Source: Paragordius varius (Eukaryota; Animalia; Nematomorpha). From it: a stretch of DNA of 64,000 nucleotides. This document shows, in pieces, positions 2,639 to 49,530 of this stretch (its first letter is position 1; every line of letters starts with the position of its first letter). The translations under genes and the position numbers were made by a program. Below the pieces are notes generated by a model, which saw only the letters and a program-made list of their open reading frames with translations, searched no databases and was not told where the DNA came from. The DNA is taken from assembly GCA_964247055.1 (NCBI GenBank), contig OZ176055.1, forward strand, positions 7,750,001 through 7,814,000, given 5' to 3'.

Positions 2639-5600
2639 GATGTTATGACTCGTGTCCTTCCCAAGGAGCTAAATACGATCATGTTACTAAACAATGTATG
2701 ATAAAGGGTGTTGCATCTGCATGGAAAGCGGACAAAGCATGCGTCGGTAACAAGCAAAGCACTTTTGGATTCGTTGATTTCATAAATAAATTGGTAAAAT
2801 TATTGTTAGTGTAGGATGTATTGATGACACAAAATCTTAGCACATGGGTACCATTTTTCAGAAATGACGATATTTATGCTGATTTCGATGATAGAAGAAT
2901 TATTCGATGTCAAACCAAGGATGAAACAATACCATGCGTTTTTCAATATGACGAAAATTTTTTATTACCGGGTATAGAAAAGTTTAAACATAAAATGTAA
3001 ATTCAGATATTTGGCCCAACCGTTAATTAGTGCCTGTTTATTTATAAATTACTCAAAAATTTATGGTTTTCACTGTGACGATGAATTACCCTTCATTTGT
3101 GTTGCTGAACATTGTGGTAAATATACTATATCATTCTAGGCTTATATTTGGGGGAGGAGTGTTACTATAATGCTGAATGCAAAAAACGCAATGTACTTGC
3201 AATCTGTCGGAACTCTACTTGTGATTGTCCAGATGAATTCTACAAAACTAATCGAACAACGTGTGTTCCGAGTTTTATGCATTTACATAATATATTAGAA
3301 ATTAAATTAACACAAAAGTGTCAGTCTGATGAGGAATGTCTCACAGCAGTATGTAGTAATGGAATTTGTGTTTGTCCTATTGGAGAATACAATGAAAATA
3401 ATGTCTGCAAAAATGGTACGCTTATAAATGGTCTTTAATATCTGTGAGTATATTGCGTGACTGTGGCCGCCTATTACTGTCAAATATTACCAAATGTTTA
3501 TCACATGCAATGAAATGATATAATTTTTGTTAAAATAAAAATTTAAGGTAAAAATGCAAGATTTTATAATAACTTAATTATTTTTCTTTCGTAACCTACA
3601 CTATGAGAAGCAATGTGGTTGGTTAATTTTGTTTTTATCTGGCATTGATATAATCACCAATCATTCATAAGGAGTCATATCAATTTATTTACCTGCTAAA
3701 AACCTTAAAATATGTGTTAGCCACCCTAATTTTGCTATAACAAATAATATTTTTTATACCGCTTGTTTGATAGCATAATTCTGACGGCTCGATGTTAATT
3801 TTAACTTTGACCATCTAAATATTTGATATAATAATTATATTTATTCGTAAGCCTACATTAATGAGTAGAGTCAACTATCTTTTTTTAAAAAAACATGATG
3901 TAAAATATATAAATGCTAATTAACTACAGGGACCCCCATAGGTAAACAATGTAATACCGAACGAGAATGTTTGGTAAAAACAACCTCATCTTTTTGTAAT
4001 AAGGCCAATGGATCTGTGTGCGATTGCTATTCAAACTCCTATTTTGAACCAACAGAAAAGGATTATGGTCAGTGTTCTGCAAGTAATATAATATACAATA
4101 TACGTTTTGCACACCAGCTCGAACTGATAAAATAACTAGTTTAATCAAAGGATGAATTCATTCAACAAAAAAATCGAGATTTTATAAAATACTTATAGTT
4201 TTAACTCCAATTTTATTCCTTTATTCATTTTACCATTCCTTATGCATTTAACTGGAGTACCTTTCGATACATCCTTCTATCATAGAACATAAATATAACG
4301 CTTCATGCGTCCAAAACATTCAATGTCAAACAGATCTTTGTCAAAATGGGGTGTGCCGTTGTCCCGATTACAAGTTTTATAATGGGCAAATTTGTGTTAA
4401 CAGTAATATATATGTTATGGTTCATATCTATAAAATTTAGAAAAGTCTACGCAAGTATCCTGCGCAGACCACGCCGAATGCTTAAGTTCCAACTGTATAA
4501 ATGGCTCTTTTTGCGGATGTGGACAAAATTATATTTTGCGCGACTCAAAATGTGTGTTAAGTAGGTACTTCTCTTTTATGAATTTCATATGATGCAATTG
4601 CACATTAGGAAACTTAATTATATATTTGTTGATGCAATGTTAGATAAATGGTCAGATATAACTTGTCAATCGGACGAGATTTGTAAGGCAACTTTATCAA
4701 AAGCCTATTGTGACTTTAATCGAGTTACCTGTGTTTGCGAACCATTCACTTATTTAGCTTCCAATAAAATTTGCCTTGACAGTAAATATATTTTTTGTAT
4801 ACAGTCTCTTGTAAAAATGATTATTATATATTGTTAATAGAAAAAAACGCACAAATAAAATGCAGCCATCATATGGAATGCTTAACTGGGTATTGCAATA
4901 ATGTTTGTGGTTGTCCTAACGGATCTTACATCGTTGGACAGAGTTGTGTAAGAGGTGTATAAATAAATATAAATTAAATGCCTTCACTTCTATTGAATGT
5001 TAAAATTTTGATTTTTCGGGTGGTATTTTTATTAGGGAATTTCCCCGGGGAAGAATGTGTAGCGGATGAGCATTGTCAACTAACTAACCGTTTTAGTTTA
5101 TGTAAAAACTTTCTTTGCCAATGCCTACCCAAACACAAGTTAAAACGCGGGTTTTGTGATCCAAGTAAATTTATATTTATAGAATATTAATAGCTGAAAA
5201 TATATGGTGTAATTACAGAGCGCTATTTATCATTGAAAATATCAATAAATTAGTCACTGATTTGCATCCGTATAATATTTTAAAATTGATTGAAGCCAAG
5301 GTAAAAGTTATTTATTTAATGATATTAGATGGAGGAATTATTTCGATCGTTTGTGTACTATGAATATTCTTACGTGTTTCATGAGTATTCTAATATTTTT
5401 TATACTTTCTAAAACATTCTATTAATAGCAAACAATAGCTATAATTTTTTGGTATCACTTTGATTTTTATTTATTTAAAAGATTTGTTCAATATATTTTT
5501 AACACAATATTAGGGATTGAAAACTTGGCCTTTTGAAAATTTTTAATTTCAAAACTATCTTTATTTGTTATATCGTTTACATTTTAAGAATTGTATTTGG

Positions 5601-6999
5601 GTTTAGCAAGAAAAAGTAACACATAAATTAATTATATTGTTCAATTTTAGGCTATTTGCATGCTTTTAATAATTAACATGTTAAAGATTTAAAAACTACC
5701 AACAAAATTCGCATTAAAAATCAATGAGGACGCATCATTTTTTGCCAAAAATAATGTTTTTGGAATTATTTGGGATGAAATTTTTTTTTTGCAAAAAGAA
5801 CCAAAACGGTTAGGATTCTTATACCTTAAATATATTCTATATTTTATTCCCTTTTTCTATTTTAAAAGGAATATTCAATCTCTACAACTGATTGAGCAAA
5901 TTGAATTGAATATTTTTGTTAAAGGACCATTGACTGCAAACGATATTAGGGATGCCCTGATTAACAAATTCAAATTTATCTGGAATAATGATATATACAC
6001 AATTAATCCGGAAAAGATTATGATAGTCACCGACAAAGGTTACCACGTTATTATATTTAGTTTAACTAACTCGGTTATATTTTTGTAATCGAGAGATTGG
6101 AATTTAAACCGATTTTTTGTTCCACATATTTTTTAGAACATTTTGATTTCGGTTTAATGTTTTTTTGCGAATCCACTCATATTGCATTCGGTCTAACATT
6201 TGTGATTCTGGTTTCGAGATTTTTGATTTACAGTAGTATTATGATAGGCAAAACATGAACATATAAACCACAAAATTTATATTTATGCATTTATTTACTC
6301 ACAAAAAAATATATTTTTGTAGTTCAAATTAATATAAAATATAATATTAACGAACAAATAATATAATAAATCTATATAAATAAGATTTTACGGTAAACTA
6401 TATATTTATAAAAATGCTGGCTTTATGATCTGTTTCCGGAAAACCGGAAGACCTACTCAAACCCAAATGTCGAAAAAATATAATCATTAATGAATGCCCG
6501 AACAATAGCTTCACCCTTTTTTAAATTAGGCCCCCAGTTCGGGCCCACCCTGTGTAAAAATGGGTTTTTTTGGAACATAAAGCCCACAAAAATCGTGTCT
6601 TTGAGACAATTATCAGGAAAACCTGTTGGACCATTTGATTTCAAATATGATTTTTTTTAATTTTTCGATTGCGCCGAGTCGGTCGCTTTTTTAATCCAGG
6701 CCCTCTTTTTACCCACTCCCCCCGTAAAATGTTATTTTTCAAAAAATTAAGTCCACAATCCATTTTTCGCCCAAGTAAACAATAGAATGCACCGTTTTGA
6801 AATTCTTATGAGATCATAATTAAATAATGTTTCGAAATAATTCACATATTAGGATCATTTTATTGTCCCTTTTTTCACTAATCTTTTCTTGGGAGTTTTA
6901 AACAATGAGTTATCATAAAAAAAATTATGATCAAAAATATGTTTGCCTTTTAGAAAAAAATTGCTTTTATATTTTTGCGTTTTGTCCGTATAATTTATT

Positions 7000-7041
<42 letters not shown>

Positions 7042-7604
7042 TATATATTCAGGAGATTGCACGATACAAAGTTTAACAAGCATCATTAAGGCTTCTTACA
7101 CATTTTTGATCATAATGGTTGCATTTGGGTTGGTTTTGCTCCTTATTTTCAAACTCATATTAAGTACGACATTGCATATATTAATTATATTTTACTATAA
7201 GTGAGAGAAAACCATAAAAAAATACCATGGAAAAGTAAAAAGCTTAGAAAAGCTGTTCAAATACCCAAAAAATCGGAAGATATAAAGCAGAGCCTTATCT
7301 TTTTTGGATGCTCACCGCGTGAAATCGAAAGTATTATATAAGTTTCATATAATTTTTAGATATTACCAAATATAACCAACTCAAAAAATTGTACCTCAGT
7401 TATTTTTATCAAGTGTATTATGACTTCGATTACAAATATCCATATGACTTAAATTTTAACTATACACCTGGATCAGATAAAAAAGAAATAATTGCAGAAA
7501 ACAATGAACCCTTTTATATGAACCCCGAAGAGATTTATGCCGAAGATGAAATCTATAATAACCCGACATATTATTCCAAAAGCATTTATTCATATATTTC
7601 TTAA
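2639..7604 (+). CDS. Putative single-pass receptor: C-type-lectin-like domain + 8 EB-like Cys-rich modules + TM + Tyr-rich tail (5' end unresolved)
   Basis: Hand-spliced GT-AG exons: 2639-~2746, 2815-~2971, 3007-3116 (QPLISACLF...GFHCDDELPFIC, CTLD-like end), 3140-3271, 3299-3415, 3930-4082, 4286-4402, 4441-4560, 4644-4781, 4841-4954, 5036-5164 (each a six-Cys module), 7053-7163 (TM: FLIIMVAFGLVLLLIFKLIL), 7202-7330, 7360-7604 (tail with EEIY, EIY, NPTY). All joins from 3116 onward are phase 1 and in frame. Joins among the first three exons are not fully frame-consistent. Confidence 0.8.
6398..6885 (+). mobile_element. Non-autonomous Helitron family copy 1 (3'-truncated), in an intron of the receptor gene
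   Basis: Starts CTATATATTTATAAAAATG and is collinear with 13533+ and with the reverse complement of 48699-49278 (GATCTGTTTCCGGAAAACCGG, ATCATTAATGAATGCCC, TTAGGCCCCCAG). It lacks the 3' hairpin and CTAG. Confidence 0.8.
7003..7037. repeat. (TA)n microsatellite just upstream of the TM exon acceptor
   Basis: Pure TA run. Similar runs occur near 24350, 33735, 35630, 38630 and 58675. Confidence 0.95.
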
Positions 7605-11285: not shown

Positions 11286-13532
11286 GTAAATATATTATTT
11301 ATTTTAATTTTGTTAGACATTAAAAAGTGTCTAGACAGGATTGATTTTATGCTTGTTTATATGTGTTTTGATATTTAATTTATGTTTTATCAAACTTTAT
11401 GCAATATGTAATTATGTATGCAAATAGCCCGTATACCTTAACATACATATGCTGAATATCTTTTTTAGCATTTACATAAATGGTCGGATGTACCATTTTT
11501 CATTAAACTGTTAAAAATATGAACTTTTTCACAGTTAAATTAGATGTTTTACTCTTTTCAGTCAAAAAAAGTTGTTTTTCTTATTTTACATTCAAATTCT
11601 TAAACACATTTTATATTTAAAATGTTTTAAAATAATTTGTCTAAAATAAACATACATCTAAACATAAATGCAAAAATTTGCATTTCAAGGATAAATTTCA
11701 TAGTAGAATAGCTACTTCCGATTAATAATTTTTGATAAATATATATAATGATCTATAATTATATATAATTTTATTAGACATATGTCTGTTTGATCATTCT
11801 ATTTTTAAACTTAAACAAGTATTCCTAAAAAATTTGGGTTTTAATTTAATCTTTAATAAATACTGTTCGTTTCTAACCTAGTTAACATACCCTTAAATTT
11901 ACATAATCCATATCATAACCTTTTTTTTGATCCAAATTCATTTAATATAAATGCATTTATATATCTTTTTTGATTGGTGCCAAAATGTTTCATTTTATTT
12001 TTTTGAAGTAGATATCCTGCCTTTTATATTTATGAATAATACGGTTGATTTTTTTTAATATTAACATTACAAATTTATTTTAAACCTCTCAAATATTTGA
12101 TGTTTTTATAATCGAAATTAAGATATTAACTATTAAGTCCGCTTTCACTCTTTTCCATAAACTATATACATTTATGAAATAATTTATTTCTTCATTAAGA
12201 CCTCATTACCTTTTCACTATTTTGTCCTAGTTATCTTTTTGGGTAGTTTTATATCCCGACAATTTAGTAAATTAACTACAGTTTTTTTTTCAGTTAAAAT
12301 TTAAATATCAAACATTGTTCTTATGTAAAAAAAGCTTATATTTGTTGCAGTTTTGTGGCTTCTAGAGAATTGGACAGCTTCAAAACCGATTGAAACGAAC
12401 TGTAATATTAAAATCAAAATTTAGTTTTTACTGGTAAAATGTAGCCTGAAAACTTTTTAAAGTATTTTTTTTACATTTTCTAACCATAATATATATTCAT
12501 CTACCTGTTGCATTAGCGATTTAAAAAAATTTGGGAAAAAAGTTAAAAAGGAGGATTTTTTCGCAATTTTACATTAAAAATTTTTTTTGTCTAATGCGCT
12601 TAAAAGAAAGATAGCATATTTTATTCGCCTTAATACCTTAAATACTCTTTAAAATATTCCAATTTAAATCATTCTGGGGTATAATTTTATTCTGGAGTGT
12701 TAACAGTCATACAATGATGTGTTATATTAATTAATATTTAAATTGATAATAATTGTATATGTGATTTCTGGTAACAAGCAAGTGTTTAACATTATGTTTT
12801 TGTTTTTTCCGAATTATTATACATTTTTAATTTGGTTTAATATTGTATTGGTTTATAAGTGCTAGGTTTTTAGATTTTTTAGAAACACCTCCAAAGTATT
12901 GTTACAGTTTCGATCTCTTGTATTAAACTTACCTTGATTCCTCTACATTAAATAATCAATTTTAATTTATAACTAATTGATGGTAATATTTTTTTTAATC
13001 CAACATGGTACTTATGATGGTTATTTACGAAGGGGCTAATATTGTAATCAATTCTGTACTGTTTCACATATTTCCAATTTTAATTTCTACTTATCGCATT
13101 TCACACGTTTTCAAACTACATATGTTACTTTCAGATAAATCCTGATAATATTTTAAAAATTTTACTAAACAAAAAGTCTTTAGAATTGGTTTGGGAAGTT
13201 ATATGTTGTGCATTCTTTAAACCAGTAATTTTTTACATAAGCGCCTAGAAATGATTAAAGCTAAAATTTGCCGATTCGTTTCTTCTGAAAACCAAAATTT
13301 TCACAATATATTAAATGATTCAATAAAAATGTATTAATTAATACGATGAAATATTTTAAATACATAATTATATTTTAGGACCGGGAGATTGCGTAATTAT
13401 AATTGTTTAAAATTGGGATACAACATAAATCATCATGGGTTGGCATAGACCAGGGCTGATTAAACTTTTGTTAATTCCCGACCCCATTTATGATTGCGAG
13501 TTTCTTAACGACCCCAACAAATATAAAAGAAA

Positions 13533-15762
13533 TCTATATATTTATAAAAATGGAAAGTGGTGGCTTTGTGATCTGTTTCCGGAAAACCGGTAGACCCATT
13601 CAAGTCCAAATATCGAAAAAATATCATTAATGAATGCCCCGACAATAGCTTCGTCCTTTTTTGAATTAGGCCCCCAGTGCTTACCCCGTGTAAAAAACGC
13701 GTTTTTTTTGAAAACAAAAGTCCACAAAAACCGTGTCTTTGAGGCAATTTTCCCAAAAACGTTTTGGACCATTCGATTTTAAATATGATTTTTTTACTTA
13801 TTTTCGATTGCGCCGAACATAGTCGGCTCGCTTTTTTAATTGGCCCTTTTACCCGCCCTCCCAGTAAAATGCCATTTTTTAAAAAAAGTAAGTCCACAAA
13901 AATAATTTTTTGAATCTATTTTTCGCCCAAAGTATAAGACCGTAAAATTTCAATGAAAATTCCAGGTATGCCCTGTCAAATGTAAAAATTTTAGTCCAGC
14001 GTTTCTTTGATGATAGCTGCTGGGTAAGGAGCGCCAAAAACTGCCCCGTCATATCGAAATAACGTGCCTTTGGGGCTAAATTTCAGAAAATTAATCATGC
14101 CATATGAGTTTAATAGCTGCTTAAGATATTACCCGTAACAAAGCAAAAATTTAGGTGGTGCAGTTTTTTAAATTTAGCCGTTAATTAGGCCCTTTACGCC
14201 CTGAAAAATGCGCCACCATAGAATGATTTTTAATTTTGAGGCAATTTTTCCAAAAATTATTGAGAGCATATGGAATCAATCATGATTCCAGGTATTCTCC
14301 AAAAAAGGCAAAATTTTAATCTAGCGCTTTTTTTGTATCAGCCTCTGGGTAGGGAGCTACCCGCCTAAAACTAGCCACCATATCAAAATTGCGTTGTTTA
14401 GAAGTAAATTTTCAGAAAACTTATCAGCCCATATAAGTTTTATCAGGGCCTGAAATATTACCCGCAAAAAGGCAAAAATTTAATTCGAGCGGTTTTTTTA
14501 AATTAGCCGTCAATCGGCCCTTTACGCCCTAAAAAATGCGCTATCATCGAACTATTATTTAGTTTTGAAGCCATTCTTCCAAAAACTATTAAGAGTATAT
14601 GGAATGAATGATAAAACTGCGCCACCATATCAAAATTGCGTTGTTTAAGAAATATTTTCAGAAATCAGACCATATAAGTTTTATTAGGGCCAATATTACC
14701 CGTAAAAAGGCAAAGTCGAGCGGATTTTTATTAGCGGTTAAATAGGCTCTGGGTAAGGGGCTATCCGTGTAAAAATGCGTCATATCGATACAGCATGCCT
14801 TAGGAGCCGAATTTCAGAAAACTTATGAGACTATGTAAGTTCAATAAGGGCCTAAAATATTTATTAGCCCTTAAAAAACAAATATTTTAGTATAGGGGGT
14901 TATTTTAATGAGTTAAGAAAAGTTTCACGCCCTGAAAAATTCGCCTCCATAGAACAATTTTTTATTGCAGCAATATTTCCAAGGACTTATAAAAACATAT
15001 GGACATTATAATTCCAGATCCCCATATAAAGACAAAATTTTTTTCCCGACGCTTTTTTATACCTGGCTCTGGGTAGGGAGCCACCCGCTAAGAACTGCTC
15101 CACTATATAGATAATACGTTGTTTTGAAACTATTTTAAAGAAAACTTATGCTATGAGCTCATTTAAAGTTTGAAATATTATCCGTAACTAGGTAAAAATT
15201 AAGGTCAGGCCCTTTTTATTAGCCATTAATTTGGGGCTTTTGTGCCCTAAAAATACGCCATCATATAACGATTTAGTGTTGAGGTATTTTTCGAAAAACC
15301 CATGAGACGATGGTCTTAAAGATGATTCCAAATATTTTCCCTATAAAGGCAAAAAATTTAACTTAGCGCTTTTTCCATATAGGTCTATGGGTAGGGGTCT
15401 ACCGGTTTAGAATTGAGACGCCATACAAAAATGGCGGGACTTTGGAGCTAATTTAAAAAATCTTAAGAAACCATACGAGTTCAATAAAGGCTTTAAATAT
15501 TACCCAGAAAGGTAAAAATTATAGTATAGCGGTGTTTTCTAGCCGTCGGTTTGGGGTTTTTACACTACTAAACAATATATTAGTATGAATGCACCGTTTA
15601 GAAAATCCTATGATAGCGATTAAATAATATTTCGGTATAATCCACATATATGGAGCATTTTATTGATCCTTTTTTTTTCAAATAACCTCCCCCCCCCCCC
15701 CCCCCCCCCCAGAAGTCCGAAGGACTTCCTCGGGCTGCGTAGCAGCACGAGATTTACGCTAG
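13533..15762 (+). mobile_element. Non-autonomous Helitron family copy 2 (2230 bp, with internal tandem array)
   Basis: 5' TCTATATATTTATAAAAA. 3' hairpins GAAGTCC-GAA-GGACTTC and CTCG-G-GCTGC-GTA-GCAGC-A-CGAG, then CTAG. Inserted between A and T with no TSD. The host hAT sequence is continuous at the equivalent position in the 26085-26371 MITE. Confidence 0.88.
13932..15567 (+). repeat. Diverged ~320-bp tandem array (about 5 units) inside the Helitron
   Basis: Anchor motif TGGGTA(A/G)GG recurs at 14021, 14346, 14750, 15070 and 15388, together with ATATTACCCG and GCCACCATAT motifs. The array is absent from the other two Helitron copies. Confidence 0.8.
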
Positions 15763-39805: not shown

Positions 39806-42800
39806 ATGTTAAAACGACCAATTCCAGTTTGTCTAACAACAAAATTGTATTGAATGGACTTTCACATACCCACAAGCATACAGTAAAGTTTCCTCCGTCG
39901 GCTAAAAATTGTGCTGGCATTAACCTCAAATCTAATTGCAACAATTTGATTGAAAATAGTTGCGAATTATTTCTCAATACAAATAAAACACTTAATCAGT
40001 TATGTGAGAACACAAAAAGCGATACGGAAACACTATATTTAAATGAGAATAAAACTATTGTTGATACATCACAAAAAGGTATTGATGCATTTAACGCCGC
40101 AAACGGAAATCTCGATAATGATAATATAAATAACAATATATTTGATCAACTTTCCGATGATTATCTATTTGAAAATAATTCAAATGATACGCTCATTGAA
40201 AATACGGCCGAAAGTAAGTGTAAAAGGTTAATACTGAACGATAATACCCTTCTAACCAAACCTGAATATGTAAAACAAAAGAACCAAATTTATGATAATC
40301 GTTATTGTGAAAATACGGCGGATTCCTTTGCTCAAATTGTCAAAAATAATCGATTTACTGTTAACGGTAACTCAAAATGTTTTGACCATATTAATCCCGA
40401 AGAACCTAATAATTTCAATCATTTTTATAATACGCATCCTGATTCCAATTCAGAAAATTCATGTGATAATGAAATCAATAACATTGAAAATGGATATTTT
40501 GAAGAGCATTCAGGTAAACAATCAAAATTAATTACTAAATTAGAATGATATAATACTTCTAATTTTTTTAACCACTATTTAATTATAATAACGAATAATT
40601 AAAATTTTAATGGAAAATCAATGTTGTATGGCTCTTACAAATGTGTCTTCATAGTTAACTTCATAATATGTAATCTCTATTAAATTTTGAACTCCGTCAA
40701 TGAAGATTGATAGCAAACGAATGATAATATATTTATAGGTGTTTTGTATTACCCTTAATGTATAAGCTTTTTGGCACATATTCTCAGTTAGTGCTCTTAT
40801 TTTTTACTTCGGTAAGAAAATTAATACATTAAAACTATGAAAGTGTCAAATATATATACATATATATGAAGGTTAAAACAGTATTTTCCCGTTGTAATAC
40901 TAGAATGACTTTTCTATCGATTATCACCATTAATTGAATTGTTAAATAATCATAAGACTATATGTAAAACAGTAATAGTGTTTTTATTTTGTTTAATCAA
41001 AGATTCTATTAACAGATTTAACAACAAACGACAAAAACGACGGAAATCATAAAACTCACGCACAGACAGAGTCGGAATTTGAAACAGAATCTGTACTTTC
41101 CTATCTATCTCATAATGGTGATGGAATGAAACGAGAACCAGCGACTTCTTTACCGATAACTACCACACCGACTAATACATTGCCATATACGCATGGTTCT
41201 TATGCCTCTATTTCCTCGGGGTCTGTCCGCTCCATAGGGGCGCCCTTGTCTGTAGAACAACGTATAACAGATCGCCTAAATGTAAGTTTACATTCATCTT
41301 CATCAACGACTTCTTCATACTATCAACAGCAGTCACAATCACAATTTACTTCCCATTTTGGCGGTAGCCCAGTAAATGCAAACCCAACACACCAAAGTGG
41401 GGAAAGGGCGGAACAATTGAAACAAGAATATTGCATTGATGAAAGCACATTTGAAAGTGCGAAAGAAAGCGGCAGCAGTAGAGAAAAACATCATGTTATT
41501 TATTTTCCCCAATCAACGGCCTCGCTTCCATCAAGTATGTTATGTTATTATAATTAACGTTAACTTGTTCAAACTTTAAAACAAGCTTTTCTTTTCTTTG
41601 GTGTCACATTAGGTAGTAGTGGAATTGCAACGTGTGAAGACGAAGAAGCTGCATGGAGACGCATGATTCTACTATACAGTACATCAGCCACTCCTTTGAC
41701 TGGTAGCTCGACTGCTAACCCTTCCAGAGAAGTACCCCCTACAAATTGCTTTACGAATGTGACAGGTCCCACATCAACAATCGTATCTTCAACAATTAAT
41801 TTTTACAATTATATGGGAGAGTCTTCTACTACCCCTTATCCTGATTGCTCAAAATTCTTGCCAAATTCGACTTTATCATCATCTACTGAACAAACATACA
41901 CAACAATAATTGATCCTTCTTGCTCAAGCTCTATTATCTCTCATTCAAATATATTACCTCCTACAATTTGCTCATCGATATCCTCATATGTGGTTTCTGT
42001 GACCCAACCTTTAGATCAAAATGTTTTAATATAATAGATATGCCTTTTCAATGTTACCTTCGTTATTTATGACTAACAACATGTATATTTTCTAGGTTCC
42101 AAAAACTTGCGAAAATTTTGGTTATAGAGAAAGCCAAGAACCAAGTAGCGCATTTCAGCAAATTATCAATCAAATGAATCAAGTTTAATCTATTTAATTT
42201 TATAGATTCCGAGCGTATTACTTTCCAGCCTTTCCCCTAATGAAATTGAACAATTAAGACATTTTCAACACCAACAATTACAAAACTTTTTATTGCTCAA
42301 TTCATCCCCTCAAACTACTAGTATAGTATCGCAAAATTCGTTACCCATAGTAATTTTGATTTTTATTATATACATTAACATATTATTATGTTTACTTAAT
42401 ATTTTAGTCAATCGGATCAGGCACACAAACCAATGAAAACTTAACAACAATTGTTCCGTCTATTGTATTAACGACAAATAGCTCACAGTCGGGTACGTTA
42501 CAGCCAAACTCTAGTAATATTGTTTCCAGTGAACCAAACATAAAGCTCGAACTTTCTCCAAACGTGAATGTTACGCTTGTTACTAATACTACAACTTTAA
42601 CGCCTCCTTCAACTTTGGCAATAGTTTCATCAGTATCCTTGAGTGGTAGCGTAAGTAGCTCAGTTGTCTCAAGCAAACGAACGCGTCGATCTAGTCCATC
42701 ATCTGTGGGCGGGAGCCGTAAAAAACATGGCCATTCGTCGCACCATAAGACATCTACATCGTCAGCATGTGTTTCCGCCGCTACCAACACTTTGATGACA

Positions 42801-48433: not shown

Positions 48434-49530
48434 CACTTTGATTCAAATTGGGGTATCTAAATACTTCAGACTAAATTTTAATTTATATTTTTAGAAAACT
48501 ACTGGAGAAAAGGGTCCCATTCTAAATTTATGCTTCTATCCTAATAAAAATTATAGCAATAAGCCAAAATATCTAAATAAAATTTTGTTTCAAAAAAACT
48601 TCCATGTCAAACTACTTCGACGCCATTTTTATTTTACAAAATTTCGAATCGTGTTCATTTAATTTTAAAGGTAAATTACAGCTAATTTTATATTTAAACT
48701 AGCGTAAATCTCGTGCTGCTACGCACGCCGAGGAAGTCCTTCGGACTTCTGTGGGGCTAGTTGAAAAAAGGGACAATAAAATGATCCACATATGTAGATT
48801 ATTTCGAAACATTATTTTATAGCTATGATCTCATAAAAATTTTCACACGCTGCATTCATACTAATATATTGTTTACTTGGGGGAAAAATAGATTCAAAAA
48901 ATTATTTTTGTGGATTTTGTTTTTTTTTTGAAAAAATGGCATATTACGGGGGGGAGCGGGTAAAAAGAGGGCCTAAATTAAAACAGCGAGCCGACTATGT
49001 TCGGCGCAATCGAAATAAGTAAACAAAAATCATATTTGAAATTGAATGGTCCACACGTTCCCTAGAAAATTGTCTCAACACGATTTTTTTCTGTTTTCAA
49101 AAAAACCGTTTTTTACACGGGGTCCTAAACTGGGGGCCCAATTCAAAAAAGGGCGAAGCTAGTGTCAGGGCATTCATTAATGATTATATTTTTTCGACAT
49201 TTGGATTTGAATGGGTCTACGGGTTTTTCCGGAAACAGATCACAAAGCCAGCATTTTCCATTTTTATAAATATATAGATTACATCTAACATTGATAGAAA
49301 TAGAAAAAGTGGTTTTGTATTATTTTTCAATTTAGCTAATGAACACATGTGTTGACTAATTTTTACCTTTGGGTTTTACATTAAAATAAATGATATGAAG
49401 TATTTTTGAATAAAATTTCGGTTTATTAATGAAGTACAAAATTTTGCCATGGTTTCGATTCCTTCCATATTTTTTTAATTATTCAATTTTAAACAGTGGA
49501 ATCAAAGGACTGAAATGAATGTGTTGAGTG
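48434..49530 (-). mobile_element. piggyBac-like family B copy interrupted by a Helitron
   Basis: TTAA at 48430-48433 and 49531-49534. Removing 48699-49278 restores a sequence collinear with 36172-36742. Confidence 0.8.
48699..49278 (-). mobile_element. Non-autonomous Helitron family copy 3 (580 bp, complete)
   Basis: On the - strand: GATGTAA|TCTATATATTTATAAAAA ... hairpins ... GATTTACGCTAG|TTTAAAT. The empty site GATGTAATTTAAAT is at 36474-36487. This gives 5' TC, 3' CTAG, an A|T target and no TSD. Confidence 0.92.

Follow-up and report, generated by a model that had tools for sequence, protein, structure and literature searches.

Introns shorter than 30 nucleotides (nt) were long thought to be absent from animals, until in 2026 they were documented in two lineages of parasites with compact genomes, the myxobolid myxozoans and Dicyema japonicum, the only animals in which introns of less than 30 bp are known (PMC13644364). 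We analyzed a 64,000-nt stretch of the nematomorph Paragordius varius (the window; forward-strand positions 7,750,001 to 7,814,000 of contig OZ176055.1, or C6, in GenBank assembly GCA_964247055.1), in which a multi-exon gene for a putative receptor very likely carries five such introns or slightly longer ones, here named J1 to J5. An earlier annotation made from the letters alone (the sequence-only reading) had proposed these segments and had assigned introns of 20-35 nt mainly to dicyemids and some ciliates, a list that is outdated since myxobolid myxozoans were added to it in 2026 (PMC13644364). Positions below are those of the window unless a contig is named.

The myxobolids (Henneguya salminicola, Thelohanellus kitauei and Myxobolus rasmusseni) resemble the present case in being animal parasites with GT-AG introns of less than 30 nt at conserved positions between conserved exons (RPS13 in myxobolids; RPL3 and CCT genes here), with a 5' signal reduced to about GTa, A residues upstream of the AG and a canonical U2 (PMC13644364). 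They differ in that their median intron measures 22-27 nt and their genomes are compact with relatively few transposable elements (PMC13644364), whereas in P. varius the tiny introns appear to form one class beside ordinary (54-500 nt) and kilobase repeat-bearing introns in an assembly of 110.6 Mb, the T-rich run before the AG is kept, and the animal is an ecdysozoan, not a cnidarian. Dicyema japonicum, a bilaterian parasite, also has introns of less than 30 nt and reduced splice-site motifs (summarised in PMC13644364), and ciliates have introns of similar size (about 25 nt in Paramecium, 15-16 nt in Stentor) that are handled by a canonical spliceosome (10.1101/2021.08.05.455221; PMC5014332; PMC13644364). 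Ciliates differ in being unicellular and in that essentially all of their introns are tiny. The genome of Dicyema is small and gene-poor and nearly all of its introns are tiny, whereas here long and tiny introns stand in one gene. Parasitic flatworms (tapeworms and schistosomes) have a class of 30-40-nt introns and mix very short with very long ones, and the two 38-nt introns of the receptor gene fall in that range. The flatworm mode lies above 30 nt, and we know of no report of a 23-29-nt class in flatworms. The protein itself recalls the EB-module proteins (PF01683, described from Caenorhabditis elegans), with which it shares tandem cysteine (Cys)-rich modules of about 40 residues; here each module has six Cys and occupies one phase-1 exon, and the modules are joined to a transmembrane helix and a tyrosine (Tyr)-rich tail. 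A search of a literature library found no paper linking Nematomorpha with short introns, and the word "intron" is absent from the Gordionus genome paper and from the comparative nematomorph preprint.

Five candidate micro-introns in a receptor gene

The gene is located on the plus strand at about 2.6-7.6 kb of the window, the window having a guanine plus cytosine (GC) content of about 28%. The coordinates, lengths (23, 27, 38, 38 and 29 nt) and sequences that the sequence-only reading had given for the five segments were all exact:

3117-3139, plus strand: micro-intron J1, 23 nt, GTAAAT..TCTAG, phase 1, stops in both flanking frames, GC 22%
3272-3298, plus strand: micro-intron J2, 27 nt, GTTTTA..TATTAG, phase 1, in frame, GC 18.5%
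4403-4440, plus strand: micro-intron J3, 38 nt, GTAATA..AATTTAG, phase 1, frame requires removal
7164-7201, plus strand: micro-intron J4, 38 nt, GTACGA..CTATAAG, phase 1, frame requires removal
7331-7359, plus strand: micro-intron J5, 29 nt, GTATTA..ATTTTTAG, phase 1, frame requires removal

All five start with GT and end with AG. J1 (23 nt), J2 (27 nt) and J5 (29 nt) are under 30 nt, and both 38-nt introns (J3 and J4) are outside that class. In three-frame translation, the coding frames flanking the 23-, 38-, 38- and 29-nt segments differ and stops lie inside, so that these four must go for the frame to be kept, as had been claimed. The 27-nt segment keeps the frame and contains no stop, the frame of 3121-3435 being open throughout. 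For each junction we enumerated all frame-compatible GT..AG pairs, yielding 23, 26 or 41 nt at J1 (two more, of 56 and 59 nt, would remove part of the EB module), 27 nt, 54 nt or read-through at J2, six options of 26-62 nt at J3, 38 or 44 nt only at J4, and 29 or 41 nt at J5. Since no frame-compatible option exceeds 62 nt at any junction, very short introns are unavoidable, whatever the exact sites; the choice between 23 and 26 nt at J1 is the sole serious site ambiguity. With the proposed sites, the spliced chain from 3116 to the stop at 7602-7604 comprises 502 codons with no internal stop (script count).

The exons of the EB modules provided a test of position. For this test, splice sites were placed by frame alone, and the rule was set by the introns of 514, 203, 83, 59 and 81 nt. 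Each of the eight modules has six Cys, all 48 of them intact, and each of the eight exons opens with a split codon and exactly 6 residues ahead of the first Cys and closes exactly 2 residues and 1 nt past the last one. The J1 acceptor, both ends of J2 and both ends of J3 were found at the positions predicted by this rule. With a chance of about 0.05 of finding GT or AG at any one fixed site, five matches at fixed sites are very unlikely to be due to chance. That both J2 ends obey the module rule bears out the earlier statement that removal of the 27 nt restores a pattern of one module per phase-1 exon.

J4 and J5 were compared with paralogs in the same genome. A search of the genome with the tail exon yielded paralogs on C7 (L003), C2 (L004) and C4 (L009), together with two more distant copies. 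Directly after the transmembrane segment, where the window gene has J4, the three close paralogs carry phase-1 introns as well, of 91 nt in L003, 80 nt in L004 and 84 nt in L009, and the W of a WK motif stands 9 residues after the split codon in the window gene, L003 and L004. At the J5 position L009 has a phase-1 intron of 1,019 nt at the same site, a split codon plus 10 residues before YLxYFY; L003 and L004 are intronless there, and the spliced product of the window gene aligns with them within 2 residues. A search of the genome with the N-terminal exon found no paralog, so there is no comparative test of J1.

Short introns in conserved genes and their splice signals

Conserved families were located by a Pfam profile search of the genome, and the matches were then read by eye. 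We identified a total of 15 micro-introns of 23-36 nt in five conserved genes, namely eight in RPL3 (24-29 nt, along the whole gene), six in three CCT genes (24 nt; 27, 28 and 36 nt; 23 and 23 nt) and one of 25 nt directly after the ATG of RPL4. All 15 have GT..AG ends, and removal of each restores conserved protein sequence, in the CCT genes that of the N-terminal part of the chaperonin; Pfam positions are contiguous across one of the 23-nt CCT introns (18-38 / 39-103) and across the 36-nt one (17-37 / 38-69). The other introns of these genes measure 54-700 nt, and sizes grade continuously. The class is not universal: the parts read of the genes for cyclophilin A, HSC70 and BiP showed no tiny introns. 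Its prevalence is judged here from five conserved genes. Together with the 514- and 1,888-nt introns of the receptor gene, these 15 introns strongly, though indirectly, support the earlier proposal that introns of about 23 nt are spliced in this lineage, whose genome is rich in repeats and not compact. On these comparisons, it is highly probable that introns of about 21-36 nt form a class found throughout the genome, beside ordinary and kilobase repeat-bearing introns and even in one gene with them.

Three side observations concern the same class. RPL3 (L048:1473-1500 on C5, 28 nt) and RPL4 (L051 on the minus strand of C2, 25 nt) both have a phase-0 tiny intron right after the ATG. In a Ribosomal_L7Ae gene (PF01248; C5:3276392-3276635), two profile matches meet at position 57 and are 22 nt apart, which is probably a tiny intron. 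In the POU gene of the window, a 23-nt intron had been claimed at 42183-42205, in the non-conserved, low-complexity N-terminal part, where it is not decisive; the conserved POU and homeodomain exons of this gene are separated by ordinary introns only.

To score candidate sites, a position matrix was built from the 15 reference micro-introns; its profile comprises GT[A/T], an A at -8 (0.65) and a T-rich run from -6 to -4 before the AG. Left out one at a time, the reference introns scored -2.5 to 7.5, against a mean of -11.5 for decoys, which were the 4,130 GT-N-AG pairs of 21-38 nt in the window. Because such pairs are frequent, GT and AG ends alone carry no weight, and the weight comes from position. 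J1 to J5 scored -1.3, -2.5, 6.3, -4.9 and 8.4, each above its local alternatives. The score of J3 was matched or exceeded by 0.4% of decoys and that of J5 was above all 4,130 of them, while J2 is at the low end of the class; a GTT donor like that of J2 is present in 5 of the 15 reference introns. At J1, the donor of the 26-nt option (GTGGTA, at 3114) scored -11.3, against -1.3 for GTAAAT. An A that may serve as branch point stands at -8 in J3, J4 and J5 and at -7 in J1 and J2, as read from the sequences.

The sequence-only reading had suggested inspecting small nuclear RNAs (snRNAs), U1 and U2 among them, for losses or changes. U1 and U2 were found to be canonical and multi-copy, with no sign of an altered spliceosome: the U2 snRNA reaches 177.7 bits and has the GTAGTA branch-recognition sequence, and the U1 snRNA reaches 124 bits and has the 5'-splice-site recognition sequence ACTTACCTG. 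As a side observation, the U2 genes form a cluster of more than 25 matches at C3:0.26-0.53 Mb and the U1 genes one of more than 10 at C6:0.56-0.63 Mb, many copies of both being degenerate and scoring far below the best ones, and further U2 matches are located near the starts of C4, C6 and C8, no more than about 13 kb in. The major (U2-type) spliceosome would remove the micro-introns, recognizing a GT[A/T] donor, an AG acceptor and, about 7-9 nt before the 3' end of the intron in T/A-rich surroundings, an A that serves as branch point. In a 23-nt intron, the 5' splice site and the branch point would thereby be separated by only about 15 nt. Such a distance is far below what well-studied spliceosomes accept.

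Nematomorpha would then be the third, independent animal lineage with genome-wide spliceosomal introns of 21-29 nt, and the first in which these share genes with kilobase repeat-filled introns, a conclusion that we regard as somewhat better than even. This genome would add an ecdysozoan lineage to the animals with introns of less than 30 nt, and extreme intron shortening would not simply be a by-product of whole-genome compaction. The presence of introns of 23 nt and 1.9 kb in one gene would separate the minimum intron size of the spliceosome from genome compaction and would offer a system for comparing short and long introns under one spliceosome. Because standard predictors may not call such introns, published nematomorph gene sets may be partly distorted, and this may extend to their low BUSCO scores and to the many universal genes reported as lost. 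Annotation pipelines with a lower bound on intron length could fragment or overlook a gene such as RPL3, with its eight tiny introns, or this receptor, which could bias conclusions on the gene content of the phylum. The sequence-only reading had expected gene finders to mis-annotate such genes, and the lack of any match to the tail exon among public proteins is consistent with that.

Alternative explanations

From the genomic sequence and the comparisons above, it is very likely that J1 to J5 are real introns with GT-AG ends, removed by the spliceosome, in a lineage-specific gene. Several points count against this. Splicing is read here from DNA and from comparison, and protein searches with the tail exon and with an RPL3 exon yielded no transcript product of the same species. 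These searches used single exons, and the comparison is with paralogs within the genome. The 5' end of the gene is ambiguous, J1 has the 26-nt frame-compatible alternative with its donor at 3114, and translation could pass through the 27-nt segment without a frameshift. J4 (-4.9) scores slightly below the range of the verified class, and with splice signals this weak the score alone can't separate true sites from the many chance GT..AG pairs.

The alternative that survives best, though we consider it unlikely, is that the gene is spliced and that some of the five introns are misdrawn or optional, with the 27 nt kept as a linker of 9 residues, always or in one isoform, and J1 perhaps measuring 26 nt. 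The 27-nt segment is in frame without a stop, the donor at 3114 leaves the frame intact and even recreates a Cys codon, and J1 and J2 both score at the low end of the class. Retention of the 27 nt would, however, break a geometry common to all eight modules, and it would place a stretch of 18.5% GC in exons where 0.2% of windows are so low (2 of the 812 27-nt windows inside EB exons are as GC-poor). The five segments have a GC content of 14-22%, against 27-41% for individual exons and 35% for the exons together. We thus consider the 27-nt segment to be an intron, mainly because of the module geometry and secondly because of its GC content. Against a J1 of 26 nt stands its donor GTGGTA, which scores 10 units under GTAAAT.

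A very improbable alternative attributes the frame breaks to indels in the assembly or to the mutational decay of a pseudogene, with GT..AG ends arising by chance. GT-N-AG pairs of such size are frequent in this AT-rich window, as their count of 4,130 shows, and the protein libraries searched contain no transcript or protein record of the gene. The breaks nevertheless coincide exactly with module boundaries and with intron sites common to paralogs. A pseudogene is further at odds with 48 intact Cys and 502 codons without a stop, and RPL3, with eight interruptions of this kind, cannot be explained as a pseudogene artefact.

Least probable of all is removal by a non-spliceosomal route, such as somatic DNA excision or translational bypass, which draws no direct support and has in its favor only the distance of about 15 nt between 5' splice site and branch point, whereas 20 of 20 segments begin with GT[A/T], end with AG and have a T-rich run ahead of it, and their sizes grade unbroken into the ordinary 54-91-nt introns of the same genes. 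Spliceosomal introns of the same size are moreover documented in myxozoans, Dicyema and ciliates (PMC13644364).

Layout of the receptor gene and further observations

The exons and the remaining introns are given below, all on the plus strand. The bounds of five neighboring introns of the sequence-only reading were corrected slightly, to 4083-4285, 4561-4643, 4782-4840, 4955-5035 and 5165-7052. Exons were scanned against Pfam one at a time (modules 1-6 for the EB family), with a gathering cut-off of 24.3 bits for EB (PF01683).

2639-2793, plus strand: first listed exon of the N-terminal domain, Cys-containing, open frame, acceptor TTTTTAG at 2638
2794-2814, plus strand: candidate sixth micro-intron, 21 nt, in frame, ends in the stop TAG; matrix score 0.6, inside the range of the verified class
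2815-2996, plus strand: second exon of the N-terminal domain, 3' end ambiguous (2981 or 2996)
2982-3030, plus strand: span with a candidate seventh short intron, at 2982-3006 (25 nt), 2997-3030 (34 nt) or 2982-3030 (49 nt)
3031-3116, plus strand: last exon of the N-terminal domain, ..GFHCDDELPFICVAEHC, phase-1 end, start at 3007 or 3031
3140-3271, plus strand: EB module 1 exon, 6 Cys, PF01683 at 29.0 bits
3299-3415, plus strand: EB module 2 exon, PF01683 at 32.8 bits
3416-3929, plus strand: ordinary intron, 514 nt
3930-4082, plus strand: EB-like module 3 exon, 6 Cys, no significant Pfam match alone
4083-4285, plus strand: ordinary intron, 203 nt
4286-4402, plus strand: EB module 4 exon, PF01683 at 23.4 bits, just below the cut-off
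4441-4560, plus strand: EB module 5 exon, PF01683 at 15.8 bits, below the cut-off
4561-4643, plus strand: intron, 83 nt
4644-4781, plus strand: EB-like module 6 exon, by exon geometry, no EB match in the Pfam scan
4782-4840, plus strand: intron, 59 nt
4841-4954, plus strand: EB-like module 7 exon, by exon geometry
4955-5035, plus strand: intron, 81 nt
5036-5164, plus strand: EB-like module 8 exon, by exon geometry
5165-7052, plus strand: long intron, 1,888 nt; interspersed repeat near 6393-6877, (TA)n run near 7006-7038
7053-7163, plus strand: transmembrane exon, ..SYTFLIIMVAFGLVLLLIFKLIL, phase 1 at both ends
7202-7330, plus strand: juxtamembrane exon, basic, ..IPWKSKKLRK..
7360-7604, plus strand: last exon, Tyr-rich cytoplasmic tail and stop, YLSYFYQVYYDFDY.., NPEEIY, NNPTYY

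The product is predicted to be a lineage-specific type I membrane protein comprising an N-terminal Cys-containing domain, eight EB modules, a transmembrane helix and a Tyr-rich tail. PF01683 was above the cut-off in modules 1 and 2 and weaker in modules 4 and 5, and modules 3 and 6 had no EB match. We do not endorse a C-type lectin label for the N-terminal domain, whose three exons, scanned singly, had no Pfam match. Upstream of J1, the gene very probably has two further very short introns, one at 2794-2814, for which the frame-compatible alternatives measure 30-72 nt, and one within 2982-3030.

A tail motif YLxYFYxxYYDFDYxYxYD is found in the receptor family at 7362-7601 of the window and in L003, L004 and L005/L009. 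The tail exon had no relatives in a word-indexed protein library and no matches among 1.84 billion representative proteins, and in a protein search the best match to a 122-aa RPL3 exon had 85% identity, with no match from the same species. With no relatives of the tail outside this genome, the receptor is taken to be lineage-specific, and the small family that shares the motif is private to this genome. NPEEIY and NNPTYY in the tail of the window gene resemble NPxY-type sorting or phosphotyrosine motifs, and may act as such.

The introns that accompany the micro-introns had been described as filled with transposable elements. This is borne out for the 1.9-kb intron, whose repeat has copies on other chromosomes, and not for those of 514 and 203 nt. 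The repeat is an interspersed element of about 500 nt (6393-6877) with 77-87% identity among copies, which are located in the window also at 48762-49282 and 13531-13899 and elsewhere on C1, C2 and C4; its translations share a ..LGPQFGPT..-like stretch.

The assembly comprises 110.6 Mb in 44 contigs, against 200-300 Mb for published nematomorph assemblies. Long perfect inverted repeats in mitochondrial protein-coding genes are a peculiarity of Nematomorpha (PMC6649704), and this is matched by the mitochondrial contig C44 (15,693 bp), which has perfect spacerless palindromes with arms of up to 208 nt at 100% complementarity, 11 of the 12 longest lying inside long open frames (genetic code 5). 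The same contig contains a tandem array of a hairpin unit of about 72 nt at about 6750-7450, just before COX1.

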